Of a stretch of DNA of 64,000 nucleotides, positions 4,497-61,109 are shown in pieces. The stretch is taken from contig JAKMXF010000336.1 in assembly GCA_024704765.1 (NCBI GenBank), positions 62,001 through 126,000 of the forward strand, written 5' to 3'. How positions within the stretch are numbered: position 1 is the stretch's first letter; each line of letters begins with the position of its first letter. The notes beneath the pieces are model-generated. The model did no database searches, was not told where the DNA came from, and saw only the letters and a list, made by a program, of their open reading frames with translations. Source of the stretch: Oopsacas minuta (Eukaryota > Animalia > Porifera). The position numbers and the translations under genes were made by a program.

Positions 4497-5345
4497 TCAA
4501 AAAATATTGAAACGATGTTCACCTCCTTCACAAACTACAATAACTCTTCCTCTGTTATCTACTGCAATACCAGAAGGACAAGCTATAGATATCTTGTGTA
4601 TCAAATCAAATTGAGAGTTGAAAATAGAAATAGAGCTAGAATAATATTCTGTAATAAGAATATTGTTAGAATTGTCAATATAGAAGAAGCAGAGATTCAT
4701 CAGCTGTAATCCATATCCTCTAGAAAGAATATTCTTATGTAGAATAAGATTATAGTTGTACAGATGAAGACAAGGATTAGATCGATCAAGAATATAAATG
4801 AATTCTTTTGTGAGTTTAACATCAACAGGAAATCTGAGGTTATCTTGTCCAAATTGTGTCTTGTAGGTAAGTTCCTTGGACAATATCTGAATACGATCAT
4901 TATCAGAATCACATATACATACCTCTCCGTTAGATTGATCGAATGTCAGCCCAAGAGGATCATAAAATTCCAATTCTCCTTTCCCAGGCTTCCCTATACT
5001 AGAAACAAACTCTCCATTAACTTGATAATTCAGAATACAGTTGTTAGCTTGCGAAATAAGAATTCTATCTCTACATATAGCTAACCCATATGGACAATTC
5101 ATCTTTCCTTCTCCTTCCTCATCTCCAAATTTGAACATAATCTTACCATTACAATCGAATACTTTCACACAATTATTCCCATAATCTGCTACATAGATAT
5201 CTCCTGTAGAATTATCAATAGTGACTCCTTGTGGACTATTAGTATTTTCGAATCCCCTTCTCCATTTACAAACACTGACTATAGGTTGTATCTTGCTCTT
5301 ATAGTCTACAGAGAATATTCTCTCTAAAGTATTAGCTGTAGCCAT
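4497..5345 (-). CDS. NHL-repeat six-bladed beta-propeller protein, propeller-only copy 1
   Basis: Open ORF with six xxPxG/IAV-D-x-IYV-D NHL repeats. The likely start is the MATAN ATG at 5345, 10 nt after a ttacag acceptor; the track ORF starts at an upstream TTG. Confidence 0.9.
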   Translation of the reverse strand: MATANTLERIFSVDYKSKIQPIVSVCKWRRGFENTNSPQGVTIDNSTGDIYVADYGNNCVKVFDCNGKIMFKFGDEEGEGKMNCPYGLAICRDRILISQANNCILNYQVNGEFVSSIGKPGKGELEFYDPLGLTFDQSNGEVCICDSDNDRIQILSKELTYKTQFGQDNLRFPVDVKLTKEFIYILDRSNPCLHLYNYNLILHKNILSRGYGLQLMNLCFFYIDNSNNILITEYYSSSISIFNSQFDLIHKISIACPSGIAVDNRGRVIVVCEGGEHRFNIF

Positions 5346-5497
5346 TAGTTCAGTTCTGTAACTAGAATAATGAAACAATTCAAATAATATAACTTATCTA
5401 TTTGACTATAAGTAATGAGAGCGACCTATACAGAGAGATATCAAATTTATATAATTATATGAATTATAAGAGAATACAGTATATTCCTCTATTCTGA

Positions 5498-6902
5498 TAG
5501 TAATATCTGATATGGTAGTCCTAACTTGTCCTCACATGCGACACATAGGGCCACTTAATGTTTGAAATGTGAATTACGTATTGATTCTCATTAGCACAGA
5601 ATTCTCTAAGGGAATTCTTTAGGTTTCCCACGTGGGATCTCTCACATGGGAATCGTTCCTATTTCCAACAAGTTATCCATAAGATTCCCTCTCATTCCTC
5701 AGTCAACCCGAGGGACGTCTCCACTGCGCATCGTGGGCTAACCCCCTTCGCAAGATCTCGTGCCCCAGGTCACCCCTTGGCTCAATATCCAAACTGTAAA
5801 ATTTCGCCTCCCTTTGCTCGCATAACAATTAGAAATGTCAACTTATGGGAATATACATATGTAACTAAAGGTCAATTATCAATATTAGAAATACAACTAA
5901 TAACTAATTCTGTAATCTTATTACGAATAACTGTAATAGTTTCTGGAGAGTTAGAAGTGGGGTTCAAGAGATGTAGGAAGTTATACTTCTGCGGTATGCC
6001 TTCCATTCTTGTGGTTTTACTTCCTTGATCTGGTGATATTGTACGTCGAGGGTGCGGTTCGACAAAACGATATAGGGCGATACTGCATTAGGGAGATTAG
6101 TACCCTTAACTTCGAGAAGTGGGGGACTTGGATCGCATCAGGCGTTCCATTAGTACTGCCAATGAACTCATCAATTATAAGAACTCTTTCGAACGAGTAC
6201 CCTTCAAAACAGCGCTCTCTAAGAGGTTTCTTGCAGAAGGATTGTCCGAATCCACGCAAAGTTGTAGTAGTTTTTCCAAGTCATGTGGAGCCATACATAT
6301 ACAACACTTGGGATTGGGCTGCATGGCTTTGAGTTTGAATGTATGAACTCGTACTCTTCGGGCTGCTCCCAGATGAGATCAAAAGAGAATGCTCCGTCGA
6401 CGAGTCGCTGATATATATTACTCTTTCTTTGGAGTTTCGACGGCGGGGGAGATCTTCTTGTGATTTCACCAGGGCTGTCGAGAGGGGGGTAGGCGGGGTA
6501 GTTACCTCGGGGTCCAGAGCCCGAGAAATTCTGTCTGTGAAGGTATGCATGGGCTTTATTGGCCGCATTAATAACTGGTACAAAAGAAAAATCCAGAGCC
6601 AGAAGGTAGTGAACTAAATCCCTAATCACCTCCCAATGGTACCCGCTAATAATTAGACCAATAAATAGTCCTATCACGTCCTCGTTTCTATACATATCTC
6701 CTTTTGAGCGCCATTTCGTATTTTTCTAAACACTGAATGCTTCCGAAAATTTCTAAAATTTCTAAAAAACTTGCACCATTGTTTAAAATCCGAAAATCCC
6801 ACGATCCATCTAGATATTGATTATCTAGGTCTGAAATAGTACGAAATAGTACAATAATTGTAAGTCTGAGAATAATGCAGAACACTAGGGTCCTAGATAT
6901 AA
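5498..6902 (-). mobile_element. About 1.4-kb insertion containing an endogenous CRESS-DNA-virus-like Rep
   Basis: It interrupts the cassette upstream region, which is contiguous in the paralogous copies (e.g. 8280-8340), and is more GC-rich than its flanks. Confidence 0.65.
5964..6695 (-). pseudogene. Rep-like HUH endonuclease plus SF3 helicase, disrupted
   Basis: Reconstructed across two frameshifts and one stop: VVYVW-GST*LGKTT (Walker A, GGA>TGA at 6281), FEGYSFERVLIIDEF (Walker B), CDPSPPLLEVKG (B'), YIVLSN (motif C) and AYRRSIT (Arg finger). Weaker HUH-like HYLLAL and AYLHR motifs lie upstream. Confidence 0.75.
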
Positions 6903-6937
6903 TTCCCCATATTTTTAATCATTAAAGAATATTTCAG

Positions 6938-7480: not shown

Positions 7481-7584
7481 TCTCCAATATACCAATACAA
7501 TGTACCCCAATATTAGAGCATTGGTCAGCATAATGTGCAAACTACCCGCCACAGGTTGTAGTGACTGAAGTATATATGCCAATG

Positions 7585-8274: not shown

Positions 8275-8497
8275 CTGACAAATACTTTTGTCTTTAACGA
8301 ATAAATATATAAGAATGTCAGAGTATAGGGGAATATACTGTATTCTATTAAAATTCATATATTTGTAGATATTTGATATCTCTCTGTATAGGTCTCTGCA
8401 TTGATTTGTATTTATAGTTAGAGCTCATTACTTATAGTCAAATAGATAAGTTATATTATTTGAATTGTTTCATTATTCTAGTTACAGAACTGAACTA

Positions 8498-9358
8498 ATG
8501 TCTACAGCTAATGCTTTAGAGAGAATATTCTCTGTAGACTATAAGAACAAGATACAACCTATAGTCAGTGTTTGTATGTCTGGAAAGAGGCTAGAAAATC
8601 TTAATAGACCACAAGGAGTCACTATTGATAATTCTACAGGAGATATCTATGTAGCAGATTGTTTCAATAATTGTGTGAAAGTATTCGATTGTAATGGCCA
8701 GATTATGTTTAAATTTGGAGATGAGGAAGGAGAAGGAAAGATGAATGGTCCAATTGGGTTAGCTATATATAGAGATAGAATTCTAATTTCACAAAGTAGT
8801 AGCTGTATTCTGAATTATCACCTGAATGGAGAGTTTGTTTCCAGAATAGGGAAACTGGGTCAAGGAGAATTGGAATTTCAATATCCTCGTGGTCTGACAT
8901 TTGATGAATCTAACGGAGAGGTATACATATGTGATTCTAATAATAATCGTATTCAGATACTGTCCAAAGAACTTACCTACAAGACACAGTTTGGACAAGA
9001 TTACCTCAAATCTCCTCTTGATGTTAAACTTACAAAAGAATTCATTTATATTCTTGATGAATCTAATCTTTGTTTTCATCTGTACAACTATAATCTTATC
9101 CTACATAAGAGTATTTTTTCTAGAGGACGTGGATTACAGCTGATTTATCCCAAATTCTTCGATATTGACAATTCTAACAATATTCTTATTACAGATTATA
9201 ATTATACCTTTTCTTCTGACTATATTTCTATATTCAACACCCAATTTGATTTGATACACAAGATATTTATATGTTATCCTTCAGGTATTACAGTAGATAA
9301 CAGAGGAAAAGTTATTGTAGTTTGTGATGGAGGTGAACATTGTCTCAATATTTTTTGA
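8498..9358 (+). CDS. NHL beta-propeller protein, propeller-only copy 2
   Basis: Open ORF with six NHL repeats; MSTAN start after the acceptor. Confidence 0.9.
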   Translation: MSTANALERIFSVDYKNKIQPIVSVCMSGKRLENLNRPQGVTIDNSTGDIYVADCFNNCVKVFDCNGQIMFKFGDEEGEGKMNGPIGLAIYRDRILISQSSSCILNYHLNGEFVSRIGKLGQGELEFQYPRGLTFDESNGEVYICDSNNNRIQILSKELTYKTQFGQDYLKSPLDVKLTKEFIYILDESNLCFHLYNYNLILHKSIFSRGRGLQLIYPKFFDIDNSNNILITDYNYTFSSDYISIFNTQFDLIHKIFICYPSGITVDNRGKVIVVCDGGEHCLNIF

Positions 9359-10966: not shown

Positions 10967-13405
10967 CACTGGGCAACATCAAATTTATTCCTCAAATGAA
11001 AATATATTACCTAGACTAACTTTGGGATGCTGATTCCAAATCTGAAATCAGAATTGGTCTATCACGTCAGGATTTCAAGATATGAAAATTCACGAAATTC
11101 GGATTTTGCATTGATTGGCACTATATTATAAGGTACTATACAGTACAAGTTAGGCCTATTGTACAATTTTCTTTCCCAGCGAATTGTTGGTCAACAATGC
11201 ATATTATGTACGGTTAATATTAACATTATTTTGTAAATGTAATATTCTATCTTTTGACAATTAATGCATTCTTGAGTGTTCTTGGCCATGGCTATAAGGA
11301 GGGGTTATTTAGCCTACTTACGGGTGGATTGTAGACTGTATCGATAAACCAACAACGTTACTGTTTCGCAGAATTTTTAGTTTGTAACTGATTGTGTATT
11401 TAAGCTTTTTGTTTACAATGAATACGAGCAGAAGACAATGCACGAACCACCCAGATAACTTCTGCTATATTTGTGGAAAATTTACGCCGAAGCCCCAGCG
11501 AAGAAATATTGCCAATCGTGTCAAGATTGGCTACAAGTATTACTTTGGTTGCAAAGTTGGTGACCAAGACAAGAACTGGGCACCTCACATCTGCTGTACC
11601 GTCTGCTATGCCAGTCTAATCCAATGGCTTAATGGAAAGAAGAAATCCATGCCATTTGCGGTACCTATGATTTGGCGAGAACCTGAAAACCATACGTCGG
11701 ATTGTTATTTTTGCACAACAAATATTGCTGGATTTTCGTCTAAAAATAAGTCGAAAATCATCTATCCAACATGCAAGTCTGCTCTAAAACCAGTAGAGCA
11801 TAATGCTGGCAATGGAATTCCTGTACCAATCCCACCTTCATCGGATACTATTGAAATGGATTCAACAGACGAAGTAGGCGTGGTAGATGCAGATTCCACT
11901 TCTGATTTTTCGGATCATGATGAAAACGACAAAATGATTCCCATGGGCCAGGCATTTTTGAATGACCTGGTGCGTGATTTATCTCTTTCCAAAGAAAAAG
12001 CTGAGCTTCTAGGGTCTCGCCTAAAGGAATTAAATTTGTTAAAGCCAGGAACAACAATTTCACATTTTCGTCGACGACATGCAAATGTTTCGGCTTACTT
12101 TAAATTCGAAGACTGTGTGTGTTTTTGCACTGATGTTGATTCACTCATGTATGAGCTTGGCCACGAACACATTAGCACTGAGTGGAGACTGTTCATTGAT
12201 TCCAGCAAAGCTAGTTTGAAAGCTGTCCTACTACACAATGGGAATGAAAAGCCTTCTGTCCCTATTACTCATGCTGTCGGCTTGAAGGAGACGTACGAGT
12301 CTATGGAAACCATCCTAAGGGTCATTGACTACCGGGCTCACGACTGGAACATATGTGGAGACCTTAAAGTTGTGTCACTTTTGCTCGGATTGCAGTTGGG
12401 TTACACCAAGCATATGTGTTTTCTCTGTCTGTGGGACAGTAGAGACGAGGCAAACCACTATGACACAACCGAATGGCCAATGAGAACTGACTACATTGTT
12501 GGAAGATATAATGTTAAGTGCAAATCCCTTATTGATCCCAGCAAAGTGTACTTGCCACCACTTCATATTAAACTCGGCCTGATCAAACAATTTGTGAAGG
12601 CAATGTATTTCAATGGAGATGGATTCCTACACATAAAAGAAAAGTTTGGTGCTATACTAAGTGACGCTAAACTGAGAGCTGGGATATTTGTTGGCCCCCA
12701 AATACGTGATTTGATGCGTGACCCAGTATTTCCATCCAAGCTTAATTCAATTGAATTGGAAGCCTGGAATGCATTTGTACAGATTGTACAAAATTTTCTT
12801 GGAAACTATAGGGCAGAAAATTACTCGGAACTAGTGGACAATTTGCTGGAATCATACCGCAAAATGGGCTGCAGAATGTCGCTTAAACTGCATTTTCTTC
12901 ATTCACACTTGGACTTTTTCCCATCAAACCTGGGTGATGTGAGCGACGAACATGGAGAAAGATTTCACCAAGACATCTCTGTGATGGAATCGCGGTATAG
13001 AGGTCGATTTAACCCAAACATGATGGGGGACTACTGCTGGTTTCTCCAGCGTGAAACTGACACTGAACATGCTCGAAAGAGCAAGTGTATAAAGCACTTT
13101 TGAGAGGATACAATGTTATTTTTGTCTGGTTTAATCATCCTGGGTTGTGTTAAATTGTGCAAAATGATAATCCTGTTATTTTCACTAGCAATCACTGTGT
13201 TTATTACATGTAATGTTTTGTTCTGCACAGCGAAAATTAGCCAAAAATGACAATTACGGGTTGTTGTGTGCATATGTCATATCTCAAAAACGTGACGTGT
13301 TAGAAAAAATCTAAGGCCAGATTTGGATTCAGCATGGCCATATTAGTCTAGGTAAACTTGAAACGAGCAAGGAATAAAAAATAAGTTGTAAAATGTTGTC
13401 CAGTG
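10967..13405 (+). mobile_element. Full-length Chapaev3-like (CMC) DNA transposon
   Basis: TIRs CACTGGGCAACAT / ATGTTGTCCAGTG, 3-bp TSD TAT, subterminal inverted repeats (ctagactaa...atgctga.tccaaatctg) and an internal transposase ORF. Confidence 0.85.
11418..13103 (+). CDS. Chapaev3-like transposase, intact
   Basis: N-terminal FCYICG...WAPHICC...DCYFC zinc motif; WRLFIDSS, CGDLKVV, LPPLHIKLGL, MSLKLHFLHSHLDFF and SDEHGERFHQDI motifs; no stops. Confidence 0.9.
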   Translation: MNTSRRQCTNHPDNFCYICGKFTPKPQRRNIANRVKIGYKYYFGCKVGDQDKNWAPHICCTVCYASLIQWLNGKKKSMPFAVPMIWREPENHTSDCYFCTTNIAGFSSKNKSKIIYPTCKSALKPVEHNAGNGIPVPIPPSSDTIEMDSTDEVGVVDADSTSDFSDHDENDKMIPMGQAFLNDLVRDLSLSKEKAELLGSRLKELNLLKPGTTISHFRRRHANVSAYFKFEDCVCFCTDVDSLMYELGHEHISTEWRLFIDSSKASLKAVLLHNGNEKPSVPITHAVGLKETYESMETILRVIDYRAHDWNICGDLKVVSLLLGLQLGYTKHMCFLCLWDSRDEANHYDTTEWPMRTDYIVGRYNVKCKSLIDPSKVYLPPLHIKLGLIKQFVKAMYFNGDGFLHIKEKFGAILSDAKLRAGIFVGPQIRDLMRDPVFPSKLNSIELEAWNAFVQIVQNFLGNYRAENYSELVDNLLESYRKMGCRMSLKLHFLHSHLDFFPSNLGDVSDEHGERFHQDISVMESRYRGRFNPNMMGDYCWFLQRETDTEHARKSKCIKHF

Positions 13406-14839: not shown

Positions 14840-16280
14840 AGGTCATCAGTCAGACAATGGTGGAGGTATTGTGCCAAATTGCATAAAAGTGGAAGAATAT
14901 ATGGAAAATTATTGCCACCAAATACCTGATGATGATGTAACAATCCTTAGAAAATACTGGTTACCCGTTACTGACATCTATAAAAGAAATGAGCAATGCC
15001 ATTTGGGTTTTAACTCTGTCAAGAAAGGTTATTAAAAGAATCAGTTAGAGAGAAATATATTGGCATGCTCGAGGATCAAATAATGAATGTGTTATCGAAT
15101 TCTTGAGAAAGTACACAAGTTTATCGAACCTAAAGTATCTGAAATGGAAGAACGTTACATACCACAGATATCAACCACAAGAGAAATTGGTATTTATGTT
15201 AATTGTAGCAAATGTCTTTCACTAAGGAATATTTGATGGAGAGAATTTTACGTCTACATACATGTACACATCACATTAGACAACCTAATGAAGAAACTAT
15301 CTAATAAGATAACAGTATATGATCTTCTGAGTATGTCAAAACTATTCTCTGCCATTGACAAAAGTTCTCTAGAAGAGATGAAAGTAATCGAATTAGTACC
15401 TTGTCTTATTCACACTAACTAATTTATAAATGTTACATTGTTATACGATGGATTCGTAATGACCGCATACCATACAGTAACCGAGGACAACTATGGTTAG
15501 TGTGCTAAGTCTGTATCTACAATATTTATTCAATCACTCAATGCATTGAAGAAAGGAGATAAGATTGTTATTACTAATCCATATTGTAAACTACCTGATG
15601 ATGGTTTTCATTTGATTCGACAAGAATCTCCCGATGAAGTTATTGTGACTTCAGAAGCAAGATTAAATCCTTAAATTTGGGGATGATTAGAAGAAGGAGG
15701 GAAACGAATAATACAAAGCAGAGAGCTATGAAAATGCAATCAGTTGCTATACTCTCGCAATTGATGTAGACAAAGTCAATCCTGTCTATTGGAACAATCG
15801 AGCTCAATGCTATATCCAGTTGAAACATTTTGCAAGATCTCTCTCAGCTGCAGAAACTGCCGGGAACTTGACACCACTGCTGACAAAAATCAATTTAGAA
15901 TGGCTGCTTCATGATCAGGGTTAGGAGATCACGAAAAGACCTGTGAAATACTACAAAATATCATAACAAATAATTCTAAAATCTCTTCCAGATATCAGAA
16001 ATAATAGAACTTATTAGGAAATACTAAGGGTAGATTTGACTTCAAAGAATGGCTAGCAAGGCAGAGCGAAGGGAAAATATTGAAATCGGCGAATATATTG
16101 GTCCAATCTATATAGAGATTTCCTCCACACATGGTCATGCAATGAGAACAAGTAGAGGTATTAAGAAAGAGAAGTTGAATTGTGTCTCAAAAGCAGCTGT
16201 CTTTCTCATTGAATCCAAAGATATGGATTTGAAGAATACCCAATTAATTGAGTCCATGCCTTTTGGTGAAATGGCTTAGT
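14840..16280 (+). pseudogene. Degraded TPR-SET family gene (pre-TPR and TPR region)
   Basis: MTAYHTVTEDNYG...NPYCKLPDDGFHLIRQESP followed by the TPR KEGNE..KAESYENAISCY...YWNNRAQCYIQL, with many stops and frameshifts. Confidence 0.65.
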
Positions 16281-16874
16281 ATAGAGTAAAATATGGGTAT
16301 ATATAAATGTAACAGAACTTATGCGCCACCCTGTATATGGCATATATATTATTGAATTATTTTGTAAGATCCACCTCCTTTGTAGCCGTTAAGAGAAAGT
16401 ACCTACATACAATTTTGAGATTTTGCTAATTTACAACAACAAAAGACAAAAACAACAATAAATTTACATATAAGAACCTGGAAAGTGAGAAATTCGGATT
16501 CAGCGTACTAAGTTACCCCTAGATAGCCATTTAGAGCTATCCTATCCATAAAAACAATCTACAATCAACAGAGAAACAACAATTGAGATTAAATAATATA
16601 GATATTGTTTACAATACCATATCCGGACTTAGCATACTTGATTACCCCAGTAGAGTCGTTGGAAGTGTGATTCTACCTCAATTTGGTTACTTTGTTTACT
16701 TTATATTCATAAAACAACAATAAATTTACACATGAGAAACTTGAAAATGCGAAATGCTTGTTTAGCGTACTATGTTACCCCTATTTAGCCGTTTAGAGCA
16801 AGCCTGTACGTATATTTTGAAATTTGGCTAATTTGTTTACTTTATAGTCATAAAAACAACAATAAATTTACATA

Positions 16875-17109
16875 CCATAAACTGGGGCTACTTTGGCCCA
16901 CTGGGTTTGCTTTAGCCCAAATATTGAAATTTGCTCACGTATCGAATAGATATAGTATTTGTATTCGAAATTGTCTATCGATATTTGAAAATTCGTTAAA
17001 AATTTGTCAAGTCATTTTCAAGTATAATACTGAATCCAATCTAGTTGCTTTGAAACTTTGATATTTGGGCTAAGCAAACCCAGTGGGCCAAAGTAGCCCC
17101 AGTTTACGG
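16875..17109. mobile_element. pogo/Tc1-mariner-type MITE, 235 bp
   Basis: About 45-bp TIRs (cc[a/g]taaactggggctactttggcccactgggtttgct) flanked by TA on both sides. Confidence 0.85.
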
Positions 17110-17559
17110 TATGATTAATCCAAAAGAGTGAAAATCTGATTCAGCATGTTCGATATATTTAGTCAAGTTTTATTGAATTCTTTTACTACCTTGATAAACC
17201 CGATAAATTCATAGTTATGCTATAATTTCAAAATTGCATATCGTAAATCCTATCCTTGACAACGGACAAACATACAAACAAAATGACAGAGAATCATTGA
17301 GATTTAATAATATAGATATACATATGCTTAATTACGTTCGAATTGTATAGATTGATTATTAACGGTATTCTAGGGTCACAATGTGTGAAACCGCTAGTAT
17401 TTTACCACTGTTTCAAAATGCATTATATGAATTAGCCAGCTTCCTGTGAAAGATATCAACAAAAACATTATAATGCAATTGTAACAAAATGAAAATAAAT
17501 TTTTGAGCCATAACAGAATATACTGTATTCTATTTAAATTCATATAATTATAGATATTT

Positions 17560-17682
17560 GATATCTCTCTGTATAGGTCTCTGTATTGATTTGTATTTAT
17601 AGTTAGAGCTCATTACTTATAGTCAAATAGATAAGTTATATTATTTGAATTGTTTCATTATTCTAGTTACAGAACTGAACTA
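17560..17682 (+). promoter_or_regulatory. Near-invariant 123-nt upstream arm of the short NHL genes, ending in a splice acceptor (representative copy)
   Basis: gatatctctctgtatagg...ttattctagttacagaactgaacta is identical or 1 nt different in 8 copies, has a MITE insertion in one and a deletion in one. Confidence 0.7.
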
Positions 17683-18534
17683 ATGGCTACAGCTAATACT
17701 TTAGAGAGAATATTCTCTGTAGACTATAAGAGCAAGATACAACCTATAGTCAGTGTTTGTAAAAGGGGAAAGGAATTAGAAAATCTTGATGGTCCACAAG
17801 GAGTTACTATTGATAATTCTACAGGAGATATCTATGTAGCAGATTACTGGAATAATTGTGTGAAAGTATTCGATTGTAATGGTAAGATTATGTTTAAATT
17901 TGGAGATGAGGAAGGAGAAGGAAAGATGAATGGTCCAATTGGGTTAGCTATATATAGAGATAGAATTCTAATTTCACAAAGTAGTAGCTGTATTCTGAAT
18001 TATCACCTGAATGGAGAGTTTGTTTCCAGAATAGGGAAACTGGGTCAAGGAGAATTGGAATTTCAATATCCTCCTGGTCTGATATTTGATGAATCTAACG
18101 GAGAGGTATACATATGTGATTCTGATAATAATCGTATTCAAATACTGTCCAAAGCACTTACCTACAAGACACAGTTTGGACAAGATAACCTCAAATCTCC
18201 TCTTGATGTTAAGCTCACAAAAGAATTCATTTATATTCTTGATCGATCTAATCCTTGTCTTCATCTGTACAACTATAATCTCATTCTACATAAGAGTATT
18301 CTTTCTAGAGGATATGGATTACAGGTGTTTATTCCATTTTTCTTTTATATTGACAATTCTAGCAATATTCTTATTACAGATTATACTTCTCACTATATTT
18401 TTATTTTTAACTCTCAATTTGATTTGATACACAAGATATCTATACCTGATCCTACCGGTATTGCAGTAAATAACAGAGGAAGAGTTATTGTAGTTTGTAA
18501 TGGAGGTCAACGACCTCGTTTCAATATATTTTGA
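17683..18534 (+). CDS. NHL beta-propeller protein, propeller-only copy 3
   Basis: Open ORF with six NHL repeats. Confidence 0.9.
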   Translation: MATANTLERIFSVDYKSKIQPIVSVCKRGKELENLDGPQGVTIDNSTGDIYVADYWNNCVKVFDCNGKIMFKFGDEEGEGKMNGPIGLAIYRDRILISQSSSCILNYHLNGEFVSRIGKLGQGELEFQYPPGLIFDESNGEVYICDSDNNRIQILSKALTYKTQFGQDNLKSPLDVKLTKEFIYILDRSNPCLHLYNYNLILHKSILSRGYGLQVFIPFFFYIDNSSNILITDYTSHYIFIFNSQFDLIHKISIPDPTGIAVNNRGRVIVVCNGGQRPRFNIF

Positions 18535-47415: not shown

Positions 47416-49369
47416 TCTTCATAGCTTTGTTTCACTTTTCTTTCCTCCAATATTATGTATTATTCCTTATTGTTATTTCATATCTTATTGAGGATGCCTT
47501 TATGTTATAAAGACGCCATAAGCCCGCATTCTATTTCTCTCTTTGCGATTAACGTCAAATAGCCAAAACTTCAATACGATATTCCCCATAATTCAGATAT
47601 CATTAGTTCCTCTCCTTTAGGGAGATGCACAGTGGTGTTTTTCCAAATAACGAAGTAGGTTGTGAGTGCTCTTCATTTCAGTTAAGCTATTTCTTAGAAA
47701 ACTTAGTCGAAAGGTTAGCCCCGCGCCTGCCTCCTTCCCCTAAGCACCACTAGAGACTCTTCGAGGACTAACAATTTGATATTGATATAATATTGCCTTA
47801 TGTATCACATTTTTAGTGCTTTTATTACAGTCGATATTAGTTGTGATATATTATAGGATTTGTTAGTGAATTTCAGATTAGCGAGATGTCATGTACCATA
47901 CGATCAGTTGGTTGTAGTGTAACACCAATTTTGTGATTACAACGATACAACCTGAATCATTAGTAAACCCATGTTTAGGATTATTTATCCTCCATTACTC
48001 TACTAAACTTTATTCAATGCATGACTACTAAATCTGACTTCCAGTCAAAGGCAGGTAGAGTTAACAACTTGTCAACTGTCCTGCTTTCGACTGGAAGTCC
48101 AGGCAAAGTATAATGTCCGTTGAAATGTAAATATATTGTTGTTTTTGCGAATATTCAGGAAACAATTAGAAATATCTCAAAATTTACGTAGATACTTGCT
48201 ATCAACGGCTACAAAGAGAGTTCATCTTAGAAAATATATCAATAATACATGTGCCATATACGCATATTTGTGAATTACATCGCTCTAAATATATCTATAT
48301 TATAATACTCAAAGGGGCGTCAATTTGGAGAATAATGGATACCTCGATGCGTAATGTGGAGAGTTCATCGCGAAGCGACGAGCCAAAGGCTCGTAGTAAT
48401 GTATAACAAAATTGTAATTATACTATAGAAGATCCTCGGCTTGAACTCAGTGCCAAACATATTACTCAAATATACAAAACTAAATTATATCTAAAGATGA
48501 CAAAAATATTATTGCGAACTATGCACGCGAAACTTTATGTACCTAAAGATTCACATAAATAGTGAGGCGGCTCAGGCCGCCCGTGCTCCGCCGGCCCTGA
48601 CAAGTATACCGCTGTACGCATTAAACAGGTAGCCACTATATAGAGTTCATTGCAATGGGAATTCCTTTTCTATAAACTCTATTATTCTTCAATTATAATA
48701 CATCTACGTATTCGTTTCTAAAATTGGTAATTATGGAAATGAAATATAATCAATATACCTAAGTTGACTATTTCATTGGAAAAATTGGTCGCACATTTAG
48801 CCTTGTAAATCACAGAATATTTTATCAGAACAGCTTTCAAGCATTTCTTTTTACTTCTCACATAGGTGATAATCAATTATCTCAATTTTGTCGAGAAATC
48901 AATAAATATCAAGTAATACCTCATAAATGACTTTTCATAATTCTATCCACGAATATTATTTGTACTACCTTTCGGCTGGATAACTACTATTGTGTCCCAC
49001 TGTAGTAATTTGTAGAGCTCTACAAGATATTCATATATTTGTGATAATTATTGTTAAGTACTCATTCACAGAAATTTCTTTACATATGATCACAGCATTC
49101 TATACACTAAGGCAATGGCAATCTATTCAAATTCTGGACCATGGATGGCAATTACCCTGGACTTTCAAAATTTCAAATAATTATCCTAACGCTATTCTAA
49201 AGTGCTCTAATGTAATATTTGTTATATTTTAATGATTTACACCCTCCTAACCCAATTATAATTATCATATTAAAATACTTTAATAGAAGAAACACAATTC
49301 ATTATTCACAATACTGTACTAGATAAGTATATATCAATAAATACAGATAAAATGATAATAATTCATTTA

Positions 49370-50606: not shown

Positions 50607-50712
50607 GTCTCTGTATTGATTTGTATTTATAGTTAGAGCTCATTACTTATAGTCAAATAGATAAGTTATATTATTTGAATTGTTTCATTATTCTAGTTAC
50701 AGAACTGAACTA

Positions 50713-51699
50713 ATGGCTACAGCTAATACCTTAGAGAGAATATTCTCTGTGAACAATAGGAGCAGGATACAACCTATAGTCAGTCTTTGTAAAAGGGGAG
50801 AGGGGCTAGAAAATCTTAATTACCCAAATGGAGTGACTATTGATAATTCTACAGGAGATATCTATGTAGCAGATTGTGAGAATAATTGTGTGAAAGTATT
50901 CGATTGTAATGGTAAGATTATGTTTAAATTTGGAGATGAGGAAAGAGAAGGAAAGATGTATCGTCCGAATGGGTTAGCTATATGTAGGGATAGAATTCTT
51001 ATTTCACATAGAAACGACTGTATTCTGACATATCAACTGAATGGGAAGTTTATTTCTAGAATAGGGAAACATGGGAAAGGAGAATTGGAATTTGATTATC
51101 CTCTTGGGCTGACATTTGAGGAATCTAGCAGTGAGGTATACATATGCGATTCTGAAAATAATCGTATTCAGATACTGTCCAAGGAACTTACTTACAAGAC
51201 ACAGTTTGGACAAGATTACCTCAAATCTCCTCTTGATGTTAAACTTACAAACGAATTCATTTATATTCTTGATCGATCTGAACTTTGTCTTCATCTCTAC
51301 GACTATCATCTTATTCTACATAAGAGTATTATTTTCAGAGGAGATGGATTTGAGCAGATTAGTCTCATTTTCTTCTGTATTGACAATTCTAACAATATTC
51401 TTATTACAGATATTGCTTCTCGCTATATTTTTATTTTCAACTCTCAATTATATTTAATCCACGAGCTATTTATAACTTATTCTACCGGTATTACAGTAGA
51501 TAACAGAGGAAGAGTTATTATAGTTTGTGATGGAGGTGAACATTGTCTCAATATATTTTGTTGTTTTTATATTTTGCTAATATTCATACTTTTGTTTATG
51601 TTTCTATTTAGAATAACTATTTTGTTACATTTGAAGAAACTATATGTATCATACCTTTTTGACATTTCACATCTTATAGAGGTTGCCTTTAATTTATAA
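50713..51699 (+). CDS. NHL beta-propeller protein, copy 8, stop-loss with hydrophobic C-terminal extension
   Basis: Six NHL repeats; the usual TGA TAA after NIF is replaced by TGT TGT. Confidence 0.8.
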   Translation: MATANTLERIFSVNNRSRIQPIVSLCKRGEGLENLNYPNGVTIDNSTGDIYVADCENNCVKVFDCNGKIMFKFGDEEREGKMYRPNGLAICRDRILISHRNDCILTYQLNGKFISRIGKHGKGELEFDYPLGLTFEESSSEVYICDSENNRIQILSKELTYKTQFGQDYLKSPLDVKLTNEFIYILDRSELCLHLYDYHLILHKSIIFRGDGFEQISLIFFCIDNSNNILITDIASRYIFIFNSQLYLIHELFITYSTGITVDNRGRVIIVCDGGEHCLNIFCCFYILLIFILLFMFLFRITILLHLKKLYVSYLFDISHLIEVAFNL

Positions 51700-52145
51700 T
51701 GACGCCATAAATCCGCACTCTCTTTCTATTTCTGGTTTTGCGATCAACCCCAAATTTCTATCCTAAAACCTTGATACGATATTCTCCATAATTCAGATAT
51801 CATATGTTCCTCTCCCGTAGGGACATGTTCAGTGATGTTTTACCAAAAAACAAAGTGCGATGATGCCTTCCTCATAAAGTGGACTCGATATTTGTTGTGA
51901 CATATTATATAACTGGGTAGTGAATTTCAGGTTAACGAGGTGTCATGTACATAGACGTCGGACTTTTCATAATTCGGAATAAAGCTAACGGGGCCAGGCC
52001 CACGAGGCTTTGGGTTCATTACGTCATACATAGTGTGTCTCGTATAATAAGTCTTAAACATTTTATTTAGCCAACAACATTGAACAAAAGCATAATCTCT
52101 ATAGAGTTTGTACCAATTATATTCGCCGATTTCAATATTTTACTT

Positions 52146-52599
52146 GGCTCTGCCTTACTAGCCAATTCTTTGAAGTCAAATCTACCCTTAGCATTTCCTA
52201 ATAAGTTCAATTCTTTCTGAAGTCTGGAAGAGATTTTGGAATTATTTGTTATGATATTTTGTAGTATTTCACAGGTCTTTTCGTGATCTCCTAACCCTGA
52301 TCATGAAGCAGCCATTCTAAATTGAATTTTGTCAGCAGTGGTGTCAAGTTTCGCGGCAGTCTCTGCATCTGAGAGAGATCTTTCAAAATGTTCCAACTGG
52401 ATATAGCATTGAGCTCGATTGCTCCAATAGACATGATTGATTTTGTCTATATCAATTGAGAGGATATAGCAACTGATTGCCCTTTCATAGCTCTCTGTTT
52501 TGTAGTATTCGTTTCCTTCCTTCTTGCAATCATCCCTAGATTTTCATGGATATAATCTTGTTTCTAAAATCACAATAACTTCATCTGGAGATTCTTGTC

Positions 52600-52600
<1 letters not shown>
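52146..52600 (-). pseudogene. TPR-SET gene fragment (TPR region)
   Basis: KKEGNEYYKTESYE..ISCYILSIDIDKINHVYWSNRAQCYIQLEHFERSLSDAETAAKLDTTADKIQFRMAASWSGLG; homologous to 15620-16070. Confidence 0.75.

Positions 52601-52601
<1 letters not shown>

Positions 52602-52630
<29 letters not shown>
52602..52630. repeat. (TA)n microsatellite, about 14 units
   Basis: Read directly; it sits at the junction of the TPR fragment and unrelated sequence. Confidence 0.95.
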
Positions 52631-52633
<3 letters not shown>

Positions 52634-53367: not shown

Positions 53368-54222
53368 TCAATATATATTGAGATGACCTCCATAACAAAC
53401 CACAATAACTCTTCCTCTGTTATCTACTGTAATACCGGTAGGATAATCTATAGGTATCTTGTGTATCAAATCAAATTGAGAGTTGAATATTGAAATAGAG
53501 CCAGAAGAAATGATATCAGAAGAATCTGTAATAAGAATATTGTTAGAATTGTCAATATAGAAGTAATATGGATAAATCAGCTGTAATATATCTCCTCCAG
53601 AAATAATACTCTTATGAAGAATATGTGCATAGTTGTATAGATGAAGACAAGGATTAGATCGATCTAGAATATAAATGAATTCTTTTGTGAGTTTGATAAC
53701 AAGAGGAATTCTGAGGTTATCTTTTCCGAAATGTGTCTTGTAGATAAGTTCTTTGGACAGTATCTGAATACGATTATTATTAGCATCACATATGTATACG
53801 TCTCCGTTGGATTCATCAAATGTAAGACCACGAGGATAATCAAATTCCAATTCTCCTTTCCCAGGTTTCCCTATTCTAGAAATAAACTCTCCGTTCAATT
53901 GATAATTCAAAATACAGTGGCTACGTTGTGTAATTAGAACTCGATCTCGATATATAGTTAACCCAACTGGAAAATTCATCTTTCCTTCTCCTTCCTCATC
54001 TCCAAATTTAAACATAATCTTACCATTACAATCGAATACTTTCACACAATTATTCCAGGAATCTGCTACATAGATATCTCCAGTAGAATTATCAATAGTC
54101 ACTCCTTCTGGCCCATCAAGAAATCCTAATTCCTCTCCCCATTTACAACCACTGACTATAGGTTGTATCTTGCTCTTATAGTCTACAGAGAATATTCTCT
54201 CTAAAGTATTAGCTGTAGCCAT
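53368..54222 (-). CDS. NHL beta-propeller protein, propeller-only copy 9
   Basis: Open ORF with six NHL repeats. Confidence 0.9.
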   Translation of the reverse strand: MATANTLERIFSVDYKSKIQPIVSGCKWGEELGFLDGPEGVTIDNSTGDIYVADSWNNCVKVFDCNGKIMFKFGDEEGEGKMNFPVGLTIYRDRVLITQRSHCILNYQLNGEFISRIGKPGKGELEFDYPRGLTFDESNGDVYICDANNNRIQILSKELIYKTHFGKDNLRIPLVIKLTKEFIYILDRSNPCLHLYNYAHILHKSIISGGDILQLIYPYYFYIDNSNNILITDSSDIISSGSISIFNSQFDLIHKIPIDYPTGITVDNRGRVIVVCYGGHLNIY

Positions 54223-54435
54223 TAGTTCAGTTCTGTAACTAGAATAATGAAACAATTCAAATAATATAACTTATCTATTTGACTATAAGTAATGAGCTCT
54301 AACTATAAATACAAATCAATACAGAGACCTATACAGAGAGATATCAAATTTATATAATTACATTAATTCAAATAGAATACAGTATATTCTGCTGTGCTCT
54401 GACATTCTTATATTTAATCGTTAAGTATATTTCAG

Positions 54436-55180: not shown

Positions 55181-56389
55181 TGTCAAATATTAACGAGATT
55201 AATATCATTCAATAGAGGAGATTTGAATGTTTTACGGAATGTGATTATCGTACAAATTCTTGAATTTCTTTAAGCAATATTAACAACTCGCAGAGTTATG
55301 TAATTCAAATTGTTAATTAGTAAAGAGTGTTTAAGGATACTAATTAATATGGATTGACATTGAAATTTATTTAGCTATACTTTGATAATAAATCAAACTT
55401 AGTAATGACTATTTTAATGTTTCTCAATCAGCTAAAATGTCAGACAATTGCAGTCTCGTTGGATTGATTCGCCCAAACTTATCTATCAAATCATTGATGT
55501 CTACATAAATATCTCTATGCAGGTGAAGAAGAGAAAGTCCAGTCAATCGTTACAAATAAACAGACAGACAGACGGACAAATAATCATTGAGATTTCGGAA
55601 TATAGATTGTTGTTTGTCTGTTTATTTGTCTGGTTGTTGTCCGTTGTCAAGGAAAGGATCTAGGGTATGCAATTTTGAAATTGTAGCATATTTTTCGTGT
55701 GTTTAAAGGCAGTATTAAGAATTGAACAAAACTTCATTAAATATATCGAACATGCGGAACCCGATTTTCACACTTTTGGATTAATCATATGTAAATGTAT
55801 GTTGTTTTATGAATATAGAGTAAACAAATTTCAAAATTGGGGTCAAATCATACTTTCAACGACTAAAGTGGTATACTCGAGTATGCTGAGTCTGAATATT
55901 GTAAACAACATCCATATTCGTAAATATGAATTATTATTTGCCTGTTTGTTTGTCCGTTGCATACTTCGAGGCGCCATGCGCCGAGTTCATCGCGAAGCGA
56001 CGAGTCAAAGGCTCGAATAGAGTTAAATTTGCATTAGTAATTATGGGGTCCTGGAGCGAATATTTAGACTAGGGCCTTCTGGGAAAAATTTTTGACCTGG
56101 GACCTCTGGAACCTTGGGATCCCAGAAACATTGCTAGGACACTAGGATCTTGGGATTTTGCTATCAAGACCCCAGTGTCCTGAGAATAACTTCTCTAAAT
56201 ATGAGAATGTCAGAGCATAGCAGGATATACTGTATTTTATTTACATTCATTTAATTATATAAATTTGATATCTCTCTGTATAGGTCTCTGTATTGATTTG
56301 TATTTATAGTTAGAGCTCATTACTTATAGTCAAATAGATAAGTTATATTATTTGAATTGTTTCATTATTCTAGTTACAGAACTGAACTA

Positions 56390-57178
56390 ATGGCTACAGC
56401 TAATACTTTAGAGAGAATATTCTCTGTAGACTATAAGAGCAAGATACAACCTATAGTCAGTGTGTGGAAAGAAGGGGGAAGGCGGCTAGAAAATCTTAAT
56501 TACCCAAATGGAGTGACTATTGATAATTCTACTGGAGATATCTATGTAGCAGATTGGGGGAATCATTGTGTGAAAGTATTCGATTGTAATGGTAAGATTA
56601 TGTTTATATTTGGAGATGAGAAAGGAGAAGGAAAGATGCTTCGTCCAGATGGGTTAGCTATTAGTAGAGATAGAATTCTAATTACAGATCATTGCTGCAT
56701 TCTCAATTATCAAGTTAATGGGAAGTTTATTTCTACAATTGGGAAGCCTGGGAAAGGAGATTTGGAATTTGATTATCCTCGTGGTCTGACATTTGATGGA
56801 TCTCACAGTGAGGTATACATATGTGATTCTAATAATCATCGTATTCAGATACTGTCCAAGGAACTTACGTACAAGACACAGTTTGGACAAGATAACCTCT
56901 ATTCTCCTGTTGATGTTAAACTTATAAAAGAATTCATTTATATTCTTGATCGATCTAATCCTTGTTTTCTTCTGTACAACTATAATCTCATTCTACATAA
57001 AAGTATTATTTCTAAAGGACCTAGATTACAGCTGATTTATCCGTATTTCTTCAATATTGACAATTCTGACACTATTATTATTACTGATTATTCTTCTCAC
57101 TATATTTCTATTTTCAACTCTCAATTAAATTTAATACACAAGATTTCTATGGGTGAGTTAATGTCTATTTATAACTAA
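56390..57178 (+). CDS. NHL protein, copy 10, truncated in blade 6 and fused to the eIF3a intron start
   Basis: Five complete repeats; at 57151 the sequence switches to ggtgagttaat..., which elsewhere follows the eIF3a exon. Confidence 0.8.
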   Translation: MATANTLERIFSVDYKSKIQPIVSVWKEGGRRLENLNYPNGVTIDNSTGDIYVADWGNHCVKVFDCNGKIMFIFGDEKGEGKMLRPDGLAISRDRILITDHCCILNYQVNGKFISTIGKPGKGDLEFDYPRGLTFDGSHSEVYICDSNNHRIQILSKELTYKTQFGQDNLYSPVDVKLIKEFIYILDRSNPCFLLYNYNLILHKSIISKGPRLQLIYPYFFNIDNSDTIIITDYSSHYISIFNSQLNLIHKISMGELMSIYN

Positions 57179-58812: not shown

Positions 58813-59169
58813 TATATAGTAACAGTTAGGGCTATTTAATATTTTCCAATAATTTGCCCCTTTTTGGCGCATTCATATAGTTACCAAAGTCCATCATTCA
58901 TACAATCATTCTGTATACATAGTTTGATGCTTGTATCATAACATAGACTATAAACTGAACTATCAGCTAGATGGAAGGTTTATTTCCCAAATTGATAGAA
59001 CTGAAGATTAAAATTAGAGGACCCTCCTCTCAAATTTTCATACGCCTATATCAGTAAATTAGTGTTACGATATAGGGGAAGATCCTCAATTTTCAGGCTC
59101 CTAACTATAATATCGTCAAAAATCGTGTTTACCCAGAGGAGCGTCCGGCGCTCCTAGATAATACCTTAT

Positions 59170-59680
59170 ATGAGATAGGTAGAAAGTATATTTCCAAAGT
59201 TGGCAAATAGGAGAAGAGAAAATTAGAGTTTAATTTTCCTTTTGATATAGGTATTGATGATTCAAATGGAGATGCTTACAATTGTGATTACTGTCACAAA
59301 ACCTCCATTACAAGTCTCAGTTTGGTATTGATATTTGAAAAAGGCTTGTCATATCAAACCTAATACAATAATATTAATGCTGGATACATCCAATCTTGTA
59401 TACACATTTACAACAAAGATCTAGTTCTCTACAGAAAAGTATCATTTCTAGATCAGAAGGATAGCAAGTGAGATCTCCCGGTTTCTTCTTCATAGACATG
59501 TCTGATAATATTATAATTTCAGACTATGGTACCAGTCTCATGTTATACTTGATTCTGTATTCGAATTTATCCGAAGAGTTTCTATTCGGGTCCCTTCTGT
59601 TTCTACACAATTTGGAATTATAGTAGACGATAAAGATAGAATTATTGTTGTAAGCCAAAATAGTGCCAATTCTCTACAGA
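59170..59680 (+). pseudogene. Divergent NHL pseudogene fragment (uninterrupted paralogue of 19570-20690)
   Basis: Near-identical to the 19.5-20.7 kb region minus the MITE. Confidence 0.7.
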
Positions 59681-60251
59681 TTTAGTTCTATAACTTTTGT
59701 ATTTCATATATTACTAGGCCACGTCGCTTCCTCGGGCTACGCTGTTGCGAACTCTTTGTGTCTGCACTAGGCCCTACGGCCCTGAGTACATAAACTCATA
59801 ATCTAGAACATCTGGTAACCCTGGCTGTCGCTTTGTCAGAAGAGGTAGCCCGGTGTAGCAGCTCAAATCAACCCCCCGCCAGAATATACCCAGGTATAAT
59901 CTGGGCTAGCCTAGTTTATACCCTGGGTTAAACTGGGTTGGGAGGTTAATCTAGACTGTTACACCGGCCGTCCCACTTTTGAAAGAACTTTCATATATAG
60001 AAAGATATAAATATATTCATTTCTTTCCTGGAGACTCGTCCTATATACTTTAACGATTAAATATAAGAATGTCAGAGCATAGCAGAATATACTGTATTCT
60101 AATTAAATTCATTACATCGTAGAAATTTGATATCTCTCTGTATAGGTCTCTGTATTGATTTGTATTTATAGTTAGAGCTCATTACTTATAGTCAAATAGA
60201 TAAGTTATATTATTTGAATTGTTTCATTATTCTAGTTACAGAACTGAACTA

Positions 60252-61109
60252 ATGGCTACAGCTAATACTTTAGAGAGAATATTCTCTGTAGACTATAAGA
60301 GCAAGATACAACCTAATGTGAGTCTTTGTATAGGGGGAAGGTGGCTAGAAAATCTTAAAAATCCAAATGGAGTGACTATTGATAATTCTACAGGAGATAT
60401 CTATGTAGCAGATTGGAGGAATCATTGTGTGAAAGTATTCGATTGTAATGGTCAGATTATGTTTAAATTTGGAGATGAGGAAGGAGAAGGAAAGATGAAT
60501 GGTCCAATGGGGTTAGCTATATGTAGAGATAGAATTCTTATTTCACAAAGTAACAACTGTATCCTGAATTGCCAATTGAATGGGGAGTTTATTTCTAGAA
60601 TAGGGAAACCTGGGAAAGGAGCATTGGAATTTTATGATCCTCTTGGTCTGACATTCGATGAATCTAATGGAGAGGTATACATATGTGATTACAATAATAA
60701 TCGTATTCAGATACTGTCCAAAGAACTTTCTTACAAGACTCAGTTTGGACAAGATAACCTCAAATCTCCTTTTGATATTAAGCTCACAAAAGAATTCATT
60801 TATATTCTTGATCGATCTAATCCTTGTCTTCATCTGTACAACTGTAATCTTATCCTACATAAGAGTATTCTTTCTAGAGGAGATGGATTACAGCTGAATA
60901 TTCCCAGGTTCTTCTATATTGACAATTCTAGCAATATTCTTATTACAAATCACTCTGATATCTCTTCTGGCTCTATTTCTATATTCAACTCTCAATTTGA
61001 TTTGATACACAAGATATCTATAGCTTATCCTACCGGTATTGCAGTGGATAACAGAGGAAGAGTTATTGTGGTTTGTAATGGATATGGACATCGTTTCAAT
61101 ATTTTTTGA
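60252..61109 (+). CDS. NHL beta-propeller protein, propeller-only copy 11
   Basis: Open ORF with six NHL repeats. Confidence 0.9.
   Translation: MATANTLERIFSVDYKSKIQPNVSLCIGGRWLENLKNPNGVTIDNSTGDIYVADWRNHCVKVFDCNGQIMFKFGDEEGEGKMNGPMGLAICRDRILISQSNNCILNCQLNGEFISRIGKPGKGALEFYDPLGLTFDESNGEVYICDYNNNRIQILSKELSYKTQFGQDNLKSPFDIKLTKEFIYILDRSNPCLHLYNCNLILHKSILSRGDGLQLNIPRFFYIDNSSNILITNHSDISSGSISIFNSQFDLIHKISIAYPTGIAVDNRGRVIVVCNGYGHRFNIF

Follow-up and report, generated by a model that had tools for sequence, protein, structure and literature searches.

What is achieved by a row of genes that keep one protein scaffold nearly fixed and differ from copy to copy at the same few positions? This question is raised by a locus of the glass sponge Oopsacas minuta, in which the window, that is, the whole 64-kb stretch of DNA analyzed here, contains 11 paralogous genes for six-blade NHL propellers that are small, clustered and single-exon. 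An earlier interpretation of the letters (the sequence-only reading) had reported 11 such open reading frames on a near-fixed scaffold; all are present at the coordinates it gave, and the variable motifs it quoted (the xxPx of blade 1, the two residues following AD and the strings of blade 2) proved correct in a MAFFT alignment. Ten of the 11 copies consist of the NHL domain only (about 282 aa), while the remaining one (c06L, 413 aa) combines a helical region with the propeller. The TTG starts of the open reading frames are mechanical: ten copies begin 33 nt into the frame, with the ATG that opens MATANTLER, and for c06L the most likely start is at 41544, giving 413 aa. Eight copies are intact, and three (c07, c08 and c10) have C-terminal lesions. 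Residue numbering and the structure model refer to c03.

4497-5345, minus strand: c01, NHL-only short gene, 282 aa, intact
8498-9358, plus strand: c02, NHL-only short gene, 286 aa, intact
17683-18534, plus strand: c03, NHL-only short gene, 283 aa, intact
22204-23049, plus strand: c04, NHL-only short gene, 281 aa, intact
36924-37775, plus strand: c05, NHL-only short gene, 283 aa, intact
41544-42785, plus strand: c06L, long form, 413 aa, predicted helices followed by a six-blade NHL propeller
46546-47415, plus strand: c07, short gene, a 1-nt insertion 12 codons upstream of the stop puts the last 12 codons out of frame
50713-51699, plus strand: c08, short gene, a 1-nt deletion removed the stop and created a 45-aa read-through tail
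53368-54222, minus strand: c09, NHL-only short gene, 284 aa, intact
56390-57178, plus strand: c10, short gene, homology lost after about codon 253 (near 57150), most of blade 6 missing
60252-61109, plus strand: c11, NHL-only short gene, 285 aa, intact
1-633, plus strand: 3' flank of a further unit, 89.8% identical to 18578-19194, its NHL gene lying upstream of the window

As the last of these features indicates, the array extends beyond the window. Among the 120 matches listed, at least 44 belong to the family, and these are spread over at least 12 contigs; further arrays lie on JAKMXF010000339.1 and JAKMXF010000048.1, and the best matches are proteins of O. minuta (98% for c03). A parallel (sister) expansion was found in a second species, represented by ENA assembly ERZ25766962, where 72 proteins vary at the same positions; these proteins form their own clade, so that the families are monophyletic by species. 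An exhaustive representative search was swamped by giant multi-NHL proteins, which score through their summed repeats, and yielded no taxonomic information. A weak precomputed RAG1_RNase_H hint on a 710-aa gene within another NHL array was discarded, as a direct Pfam scan did not reproduce it.

Short and long copies alike match the Pfam NHL family PF01436 (83 bits, cut-off 20). The AlphaFold2 model of c03 (pLDDT 91.6) shows six blades and 24 strands, with the strand at residues 23-25 closing blade 6, and Foldseek aligned it with Thin, TRIM71/LIN41 and TRIM2/3 at TM scores of 0.83-0.87. Pfam detected NHL-type families only. It found no RING and no B-box, whether in the short copies or the long one, and no effector or signaling domain such as NACHT or HET. 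No signal peptide is visible, as the sequence-only reading had remarked, nor is a membrane segment, and the model shows residues 1-10 as disordered. In c06L a 72-residue helix (15-86) and two shorter helices are modeled N-terminal to the propeller. Neither Pfam nor a search of a 29-sequence profile against the PDB gave a significant match pointing to a TRIM-type origin of this helical region; the profile matched no TRIM coiled coil significantly (TRIM3, E=1.4). By tblastn, the DNA near the short copies contained no upstream exon with similarity to the long N-terminus.

Codon models, run with our own code and with branch lengths fixed up to a scale factor, gave a gene-wide mean dN/dS of 0.63. 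On a single tree the likelihood-ratio statistic for M1a/M2a was 100.8. Recombination inflates such tests, and with four segment-specific trees the statistics were 58.8 for M1a/M2a, 66.8 for M7/M8 and 50.0 for M8a/M8, with an omega of about 7-8 at about 3% of sites and 37% of sites in the class with omega=1. Twelve M1a null simulations with conflicting trees within segments, mimicking unmodeled recombination, yielded values between 0 and 4.75. A replicate on eight paralogues from two other contigs, which have common ancestry with the window copies and may also share conversion tracts with them, gave 41.3 and selected sites 28, 37, 39, 56, 100, 172, 188, 258, 273 and 277. Few sites are significant alone (posterior above 0.9 for omega>1 at six to nine), but about 25-30 positions vary strongly across the family, each top loop of every blade contributing one or two, a pattern far beyond chance. 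Targeted mutagenesis was considered and rejected: the substitution spectrum at the selected codons showed no single-base bias.

The selected sites are not scattered over the propeller. When sites were classed by structure, omega was 1.43 in the top loops (interval 0.98-2.28, just including 1 for the pooled loops), which comprise the D-A loops (xxPx before strand A) and the B-C loops (the residues that follow [AC]D in strand B), compared with 0.36 in the bottom loops and 0.37 in the strands (permutation p=0.0004). Furthermore, 31 sites chosen solely by their entropy in the second species had an omega of 2.08 (1.23-3.79) versus 0.47 for the rest. The most strongly supported residues are contained in the following span:

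17764-18393, plus strand: codons with posterior above 0.8 for omega>1 (c03 residues 28, 37, 56, 86, 102, 219 and 237)

All seven lie in D-A or B-C loops or at the start of an A strand, and every site with posterior above 0.5 in the window analyses falls in a top loop or a strand, those located in strands being mostly first residues of an A strand. The variable sites thus map to the top face of a near-fixed scaffold, as had been proposed from the motifs. Their proposed coincidence with the RNA-contact positions of LIN-41/TRIM71 was also borne out: single-sequence HMMER alignments to the PDB were off the blade register, but a family profile aligned in register to TRIM71, and the matching LIN-41 contacts are C563/R564 preceding the Pro, S582 following ADR, R611 preceding the Pro of blade 2 and W660 following that of blade 3. 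A class of sites with omega above 1 exists and neutrality is rejected. Diversifying selection on the propellers, which the sequence-only reading had suspected, is upheld because it withstood the correction for recombination, the null simulation, the paralogue replicate and two non-circular choices of sites.

The paralogues also exchange segments. Their tree is star-like (PHI-like test p<0.0005), segment trees conflict, and separate trees raise lnL by 241. c02 and c03 share an identical 184-nt tract over codons 70-131 (GENECONV-like test, global p=0.0005); because the test counted gaps as matches, the results for c10 were discarded and only this tract was used. Several copies were duplicated together with a fragment of another gene, and the short copies share a near-invariant 5' block:

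18887-19287, plus strand: PCI/TPR-like fragment from the N-terminus of eIF3a, lying in the duplicated unit's 3' flank
17583-17742, plus strand: 5' block of c03, nearly invariant, from -100 to +60 relative to the ATG
17609-17685: 77 nt of c03 ending at the ATG, 100% identical across all ten short copies
5343-5419 and 54220-54296, minus strand: counterparts of the 77 nt in short copies
8424-8500, 22130-22206, 36850-36926 and 46472-46548: counterparts in short copies
50639-50715, 56316-56392 and 60178-60254: counterparts in short copies

The co-duplicated eIF3a fragment points to segmental duplication at the DNA level, and retroposition was rejected as the copying mechanism since the units include upstream DNA and the eIF3a fragment and their 3' extents vary. 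The conserved block consists of about 100 nt of non-coding DNA and about 20 codons, after which the coding sequence diverges. An Rfam scan of the whole window returned no match and the RNA fold of the block had a z of -0.71, so that an explanation by structured RNA is unsupported. An invariant 5' block beside a diverging body is a separate puzzle, bearing on how such families are regulated or homogenized.

The architecture of c06L, a long helix followed by an NHL propeller, is likely to be ancestral. The array may then have arisen from a gene with a long helical (coiled-coil-like) N-terminus and an NHL propeller, through a founder in which codons ~9-139 would have been deleted between two GGAGAGA repeats and new upstream sequence gained. 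The upstream DNA of the long copy has no similarity to that of the second species' gene, and the short-copy 5' block is absent upstream of the latter. The NHL-only form would subsequently have multiplied through segmental duplication of DNA, its copies evolving by birth and death and by segment exchange (gene conversion or recombination).

Could the variation simply be that of recent, decaying duplicates, with relaxed constraint on the loops and false positives due to gene conversion? Decay may indeed affect part of the array, because 37% of sites are at omega=1 and three of the 11 copies carry lesions, and recombination is clearly present. However, M8a/M8, which sets omega=1 against omega>1, remains at 50.0 with segment trees, against a peak of 4.75 in the recombinant null simulations; the bottom loops are as constrained as the strands; and the same positions vary in the second species. 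Open frames are retained: no copy has an internal stop over at least 253 codons, whereas neutral drift at the observed divergence would produce 2-4 stops per copy (P for all 11 open at most 5e-10). Stops and frameshifts at the neutral rate, as in an array of pseudogenes, were not found, the lesions being restricted to three copies and to the C-terminus. A purely non-adaptive origin is therefore very improbable.

As for the ligand of the top face, RNA is one candidate, the copies being RNA-binding regulators or viral-RNA sensors whose top face works as in Brat and LIN-41/TRIM71 and whose paralogues differ in RNA specificity: the nearest solved structures are TRIM-NHL domains that bind RNA, the positions that vary are also those of the LIN-41 contact motifs, and RNA specificity of NHL domains evolves fast (PMC5908797). 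Yet the top surface of NHL domains that bind RNA is strongly positive and contains several arginines (PMC9634614, PMC5908797), whereas the calculated pI is acidic (5.2-6.5) in nine of the 11 copies and the net charge of the top loops, counted from the sequence rather than computed as a surface potential, ranges from -6 to +3. At the positions that are hypervariable in both species, Trp (34-fold) and Tyr (3.5-fold) dominate the enrichment, with His and Arg at only 2.2-fold. Mostly acidic top loops and this residue bias favor protein-like ligands over RNA, and we infer that the propellers bind variable protein-like ligands; an RNA-directed function appears distinctly improbable. Of the proposal that the array encodes sensors under diversifying selection, the selection thus stands and the viral-RNA option is weakened. 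Alternatively, the copies could be adaptors for endogenous partners, for instance serving as substrate receptors for a ubiquitin ligase encoded elsewhere, with positive selection stemming from intragenomic conflict or repeated neofunctionalization instead of non-self recognition. The TRIM-NHL type of the domain and the missing effector domain of the short copies would fit such a role, and TRIM-derived proteins lacking part of the RBCC are known, for example Brat and Malin (PMC3503706). Dozens of young, species-specific copies, binding loops with an omega of ~4-8 and the parallel expansion seen in the second species are more usual in a conflict whose targets are external or change rapidly; this is not decisive, and we regard the adaptor role as rather unlikely.

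Our preferred interpretation, to which we assign a probability of about 0.6, is that of a tandem cluster of lineage-specific cytosolic NHL propellers whose positively diversified top face provides a repertoire for variable protein-like ligands, namely non-self or fast-evolving partners. Purifying selection holds the strands and bottom loops in place, and positive selection acts on the D-A and B-C loops, which together would form a putative ligand-binding face, so that one scaffold would come to present a repertoire of differing binding surfaces. The most likely role of the repertoire would be to recognize microbes, viruses, mobile elements or allogeneic tissue, and, lacking an effector domain, the short forms may act by themselves, as binders or adaptors.

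Glass-sponge tissue is one large syncytium. A tentative and, on balance, doubtful extension of the repertoire interpretation is that the NHL propellers serve as a cytosolic recognition system in allorecognition after fusion or in the detection of intracellular microbes or viruses, an animal counterpart of the fungal WD40 incompatibility propellers, and that the 5' block coordinates expression or recombination between copies. Immune and self-recognition molecules of sponges are poorly known and a comparable glass-sponge case is undescribed: both glass-sponge genome papers are silent on NHL genes, and in the literature searched we found no published description of the family, nor a paper connecting host NHL genes of hexactinellids with expansion or selection. 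A large, young, cytosolic family with a fixed scaffold and a selected face is a testable repertoire candidate in an early-branching syncytial animal, and, if confirmed, NHL would join LRR, Ig, SPRY and WD40 as a fold recruited for repertoire diversification.

Among known systems, the TRIM-NHL proteins (TRIM71/LIN-41, TRIM2, TRIM3, Thin/TRIM32, Brat and Mei-P26) share the six-blade propeller (TM 0.76-0.87, 22-26% identity) and the repeat motifs xxPxG and [AC]D-x-x-N-x-R/C-[IV]-x-[VI]-[FL]; the residues by which LIN-41 contacts its ligand occupy the positions that vary in the sponge array, and TRIM proteins also have a long helix preceding the propeller, like the one predicted in c06L. In contrast, the sponge copies have no RING or B-box, and ten also lack the helical region; TRIM-NHL proteins are few, conserved developmental regulators with basic top loops, whereas the sponge has dozens of tandem, fast-evolving paralogues with loops that are acidic or neutral by sequence counts. 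The antiviral TRIM5alpha and TRIM22 have positively selected variable loops in SPRY and a known ligand, the viral capsid, and they retain the RING, B-box and coiled coil, which are required for function. Like the sponge genes, they encode TRIM-related cytosolic proteins in tandem clusters with selection on surface loops of the C-terminal recognition domain, although this domain is SPRY in the former and, putatively, NHL in the latter. Conotoxin precursors and sea-urchin Sp185/333 proteins are secreted. They resemble the array in the near-invariant 5' flank and first codons, hypervariable body and mosaic exchange, but their conserved part is a signal peptide or leader, while that of the sponge genes is non-coding DNA plus codons of a predicted cytosolic protein.

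The WD40 propellers of HET-D/HET-E (NWD) in Podospora anserina are a fungal non-self recognition repertoire with a proven role in incompatibility, and positive selection acts there on residues of the d-a loop and b-c turn that lie on the top interaction platform (PMC1805685). The same two loop types are under positive selection in the sponge, on a propeller scaffold whose near identity is likewise maintained by exchange among members of the family, and both families are cytosolic (by prediction in the sponge) in hosts with syncytial tissue. The systems differ in the propeller family (WD40 versus NHL), in the NACHT and HET effector domains that HET-D/HET-E carry and the sponge copies do not, and in the unit of exchange, which is the single repeat, within or between genes, in the fungus and the whole domain in the sponge. 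Three features of the HET-D/HET-E repertoire are found in the sponge array: many paralogues sharing a scaffold, selection on the top surface (likelihood-ratio statistics of 41-101) and exchange among the copies.

A tblastn search of the whole window with the longest copy as query recovered exactly the 11 NHL ORFs that the sequence-only reading had described, together with two degenerate pieces from a distant NHL subfamily, and the motif strings quoted there proved accurate in an alignment. The window has ~34% G+C, sparse long ORFs and a eukaryotic character, and the protein of copy c03 (17683-18534, the reference for residue numbering) is 98% identical to an O. minuta protein. The TTG starts of the ORFs are a product of the ORF finder; in 10 copies the start codon is the ATG of MATANTLER. 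The 10 short copies encode proteins of ~282 aa in which Pfam shows NHL only. As already noted from the sequence, no signal peptide is visible in the proteins; a membrane segment is not visible either, and Pfam detected no effector domain attached to them. Eight of the 11 copies, numbered in window order, are intact; the long copy and the damaged ones are as follows.

c06L, 41544-42785: long copy, 413 aa; in the structure model one helix of 72 residues and two shorter ones lie N-terminal to the propeller
c07: 1-nt insertion 12 codons ahead of the stop
c08: stop lost through a 1-nt deletion
c10: homology ends after about codon 253

Homologues of 409-413 aa with the c06L architecture are the norm in ENA assembly ERZ25766962, from a second species with a sister NHL expansion, and the long form is therefore probably the ancestral architecture. 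Codons of about 9-139 are missing from the short form; in c06L this stretch is bordered by GGAGAGA on either side, and it was probably lost by microhomology deletion between these flanks. An apparently intact member of a subfamily diverged in this way lies at about L003:8690-9484, in DNA around another O. minuta NHL array; the two fragments in the window are:

19571-19948: about 33% identity to the main family, without a long ORF
59112-59527: about 25% identity to the main family, without a long ORF; 96.6% DNA identity to the preceding fragment

The units share DNA that starts ~140 bp before each ORF and reaches no further than ~900 bp beyond it, with 83-91% identity. Its downstream part contains an N-terminal fragment of eIF3a, which was copied with several units:

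18887-19287 (+): eIF3a fragment (PF22591)
1-633: eIF3a fragment (PF22591)
3' flanks of c01, c02, c06L and c11: eIF3a fragments (PF22591)

Some NCBI gene models join an NHL gene to eIF3a pieces and may be prediction chimeras. The array continues outside the window, since one more unit has its 3' flank at bases 1-633. The extent of the unit, the co-copied eIF3a fragment and the flank of this further unit point to array growth by DNA-level segmental duplication rather than retroposition. The cluster is interrupted by unrelated genes at 26-35.5 kb. Among the 120 best database matches, at least 44 O. minuta paralogues lie on at least 12 contigs, and two related loci were taken from the same assembly (GCA_024704765.1) for comparison. 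Other genes and elements in the window are listed here.

11394-13103 (+): 569-aa ORF between NHL copies, its N-terminal motifs Cys-rich, unmatched in Pfam; may be part of a mobile element
15615-17296, 39953-40483, 48125-48261, 52094-52603, 55611-55946: several unrelated interspersed repeats, 130-550 bp long and with 78-91% identity, recurring between NHL units and on two other contigs (JAKMXF010000339.1, JAKMXF010000048.1)
20217-20378 (+): short ORF weakly matching the dimerisation region of hAT transposase (E=0.06)
26062-26607 (-), 62480-62965 (+): ORFs with a homocysteine S-methyltransferase C-terminal part and a weak SET-domain match, flanking or interrupting the array; probably exons of ordinary genes
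27505-32357 (-): large URGCP/very-large-inducible-GTPase-like gene mid-array (PF25683, 394 bits; PF25496), read as one ORF of 1141 aa and another of 481 aa, whose 19-nt overlap suggests a frameshift or short intron
34218-35445 (-): two overlapping ORFs with parts of a dTDP-4-dehydrorhamnose 3,5-epimerase and of an RmlD-type reductase; together they resemble a bifunctional gene for rhamnose synthesis, here in the genome of an animal

Relatives of the URGCP/very-large-inducible GTPases in other animals are interferon-inducible. A 710-aa gene in another NHL array (L003:12370-14502, +) carried a weak precomputed RAG1_RNase_H match and was set aside, because Pfam run directly on it at E<=0.01 gave no match.

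The nucleotide tree of the paralogues is star-like and weakly supported. Informative sites are more compatible between neighbours than between distant ones (p<0.0005), trees of four 70-codon segments conflict, with a gain of 241 units in M0 likelihood, and a 184-nt identical tract is common to c02 and c03 (global p=0.0005). Because the paralogues recombine, segment-specific trees were fitted beside a single tree. Pairwise Nei-Gojobori means were 0.137 for dN and 0.217 for dS (ratio 0.63), and site models (Goldman-Yang, F3x4 frequencies, fixed branch lengths scaled) were run in purpose-written code on both kinds of tree.

Likelihood-ratio tests (LRT) of site models for the window copies, on four segment trees unless stated
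M1a vs M2a: 58.8 (100.8 on a single tree)
M7 vs M8: 66.8
M8a vs M8: 50.0

The diversifying selection proposed from the sequence was thus borne out in our own code by a class with omega>1 and by LRTs far above those of null simulations: 12 data sets simulated under M1a, with two conflicting-tree blocks per analysed segment, gave 0-4.75 in the identical pipeline. The segment-tree fit placed ~60% of sites at omega 0.12, 37% at omega 1 and ~3% at omega 7-8. A replicate with 8 intact paralogues of the two other contigs yielded 41.3 for M1a/M2a and 37.7 for M8a/M8. From the third-position divergence observed, neutral drift is expected to leave 2-4 stop codons per copy, and the probability of all 11 copies staying open under it is <=5e-10.

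AlphaFold2, given a 103-sequence alignment, predicted a six-blade propeller (pLDDT 91.6, pTM 0.90) in which blade 6 takes its last strand from residues 23-25, with disorder over residues 1-10. Its Foldseek neighbours are TRIM-NHL domains, namely Thin, TRIM71/LIN-41 and TRIM2/3 at TM 0.83-0.87 and Brat at TM 0.76, with sequence identities to the TRIM-NHL matches of 22-26%. Residues were classed by the strand order of the model, blind to variability, and what is called the top face is defined by strand topology and the TRIM71 motif alignment.

Omega by structural class
D-A loops: 1.27
B-C loops: 1.87
All top loops (D-A plus B-C): 1.43 [0.98-2.28]
Bottom loops: 0.36
Strands: 0.37

Top and bottom loops differed in a permutation test (p=0.0004). 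Sites with posterior >0.9 in the window were c03 residues 28, 37, 56, 102, 219 and 237 (residue 86 reached 0.82), and the replicate added 39, 100, 172, 188, 258, 273 and 277; all of these lie in top loops or the first residues of an A strand. In each of the six blades, entropy over 31 O. minuta and 72 ERZ25766962 proteins is highest at the same motif positions. For the window copies, 31 sites picked by entropy in the other species alone had omega 2.08 [1.23-3.79], and the remaining sites 0.47. Diversifying selection on the predicted binding face is supported.

An alignment of the family profile to TRIM71 is in register. For LIN-41, Kumari et al. (PMC5908797) report RNA contacts at Cys563/Arg564, which precede the Pro of blade 1, at Ser582, two positions beyond AD, at Arg611, which precedes the Pro of blade 2, and at Trp660, which follows that of blade 3. 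These residues coincide with the variable positions of the window family, and the structural claim of the sequence-only reading, that the variable positions are the RNA-binding top-face positions of Brat/LIN-41 NHL domains, therefore holds.

The short copies share a near-invariant block at their 5' end. The 77 nt ending in ATG are identical in 10/10 short copies of the window and in 3/9 copies on the two other contigs, with few-base differences in 6/9. Over 18 copies, divergence between -100 and +60 is 1-5%, compared with a dS of ~0.2, 72-77% identity in homologous DNA further upstream and 26-40% divergence in the 3' flank. The block matches no known RNA, its fold is not unusual, and it was found neither in the DNA of ERZ25766962 nor upstream of c06L, apart from ~34 nt at the ATG. 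It could be a promoter/5'UTR held uniform by conversion, or reflect very strong constraint; partial homogenisation through assembly polishing is also possible.

Positions hypervariable in both species are enriched 34-fold in Trp, 3.5-fold in Tyr and 2.2-fold in His and Arg, the usual composition of protein-binding hot spots. The pI is 5.2-6.5 in 9/11 copies and the net charge of the top loops, from sequence counts, is -6 to +3; the top surface of RNA-binding NHL domains is strongly positive (PMC9634614, PMC5908797). Given the acidic or neutral top loops and the residue enrichment, protein-like ligands would rank above RNA. The sensor role proposed earlier is plausible from sequence, RNA being the weaker option. 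The family appears undescribed: the two glass-sponge genome papers make no mention of NHL genes, and the literature searched gives no link between hexactinellid host NHL genes and expansion or selection.

The O. minuta and ERZ25766962 families are reciprocally monophyletic (support 0.99), which indicates either independent expansions or concerted evolution. By domain type the window proteins resemble TRIM-NHL proteins in their NHL propeller. However, Pfam found no RING or B-box in them, and the helical region, present in one copy only (c06L), has no demonstrable TRIM-like relationship by Pfam or profile search; for these reasons they are not TRIM-NHL proteins. In behaviour, the HET-D/E WD40 family of Podospora is the nearest case described. 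Its repeats are homogenised by exchange and are under positive diversifying selection at two parts of the top platform, the d-a loop and the b-c turn (PMC1805685). The NACHT and HET domains present there are missing in the window NHL proteins.
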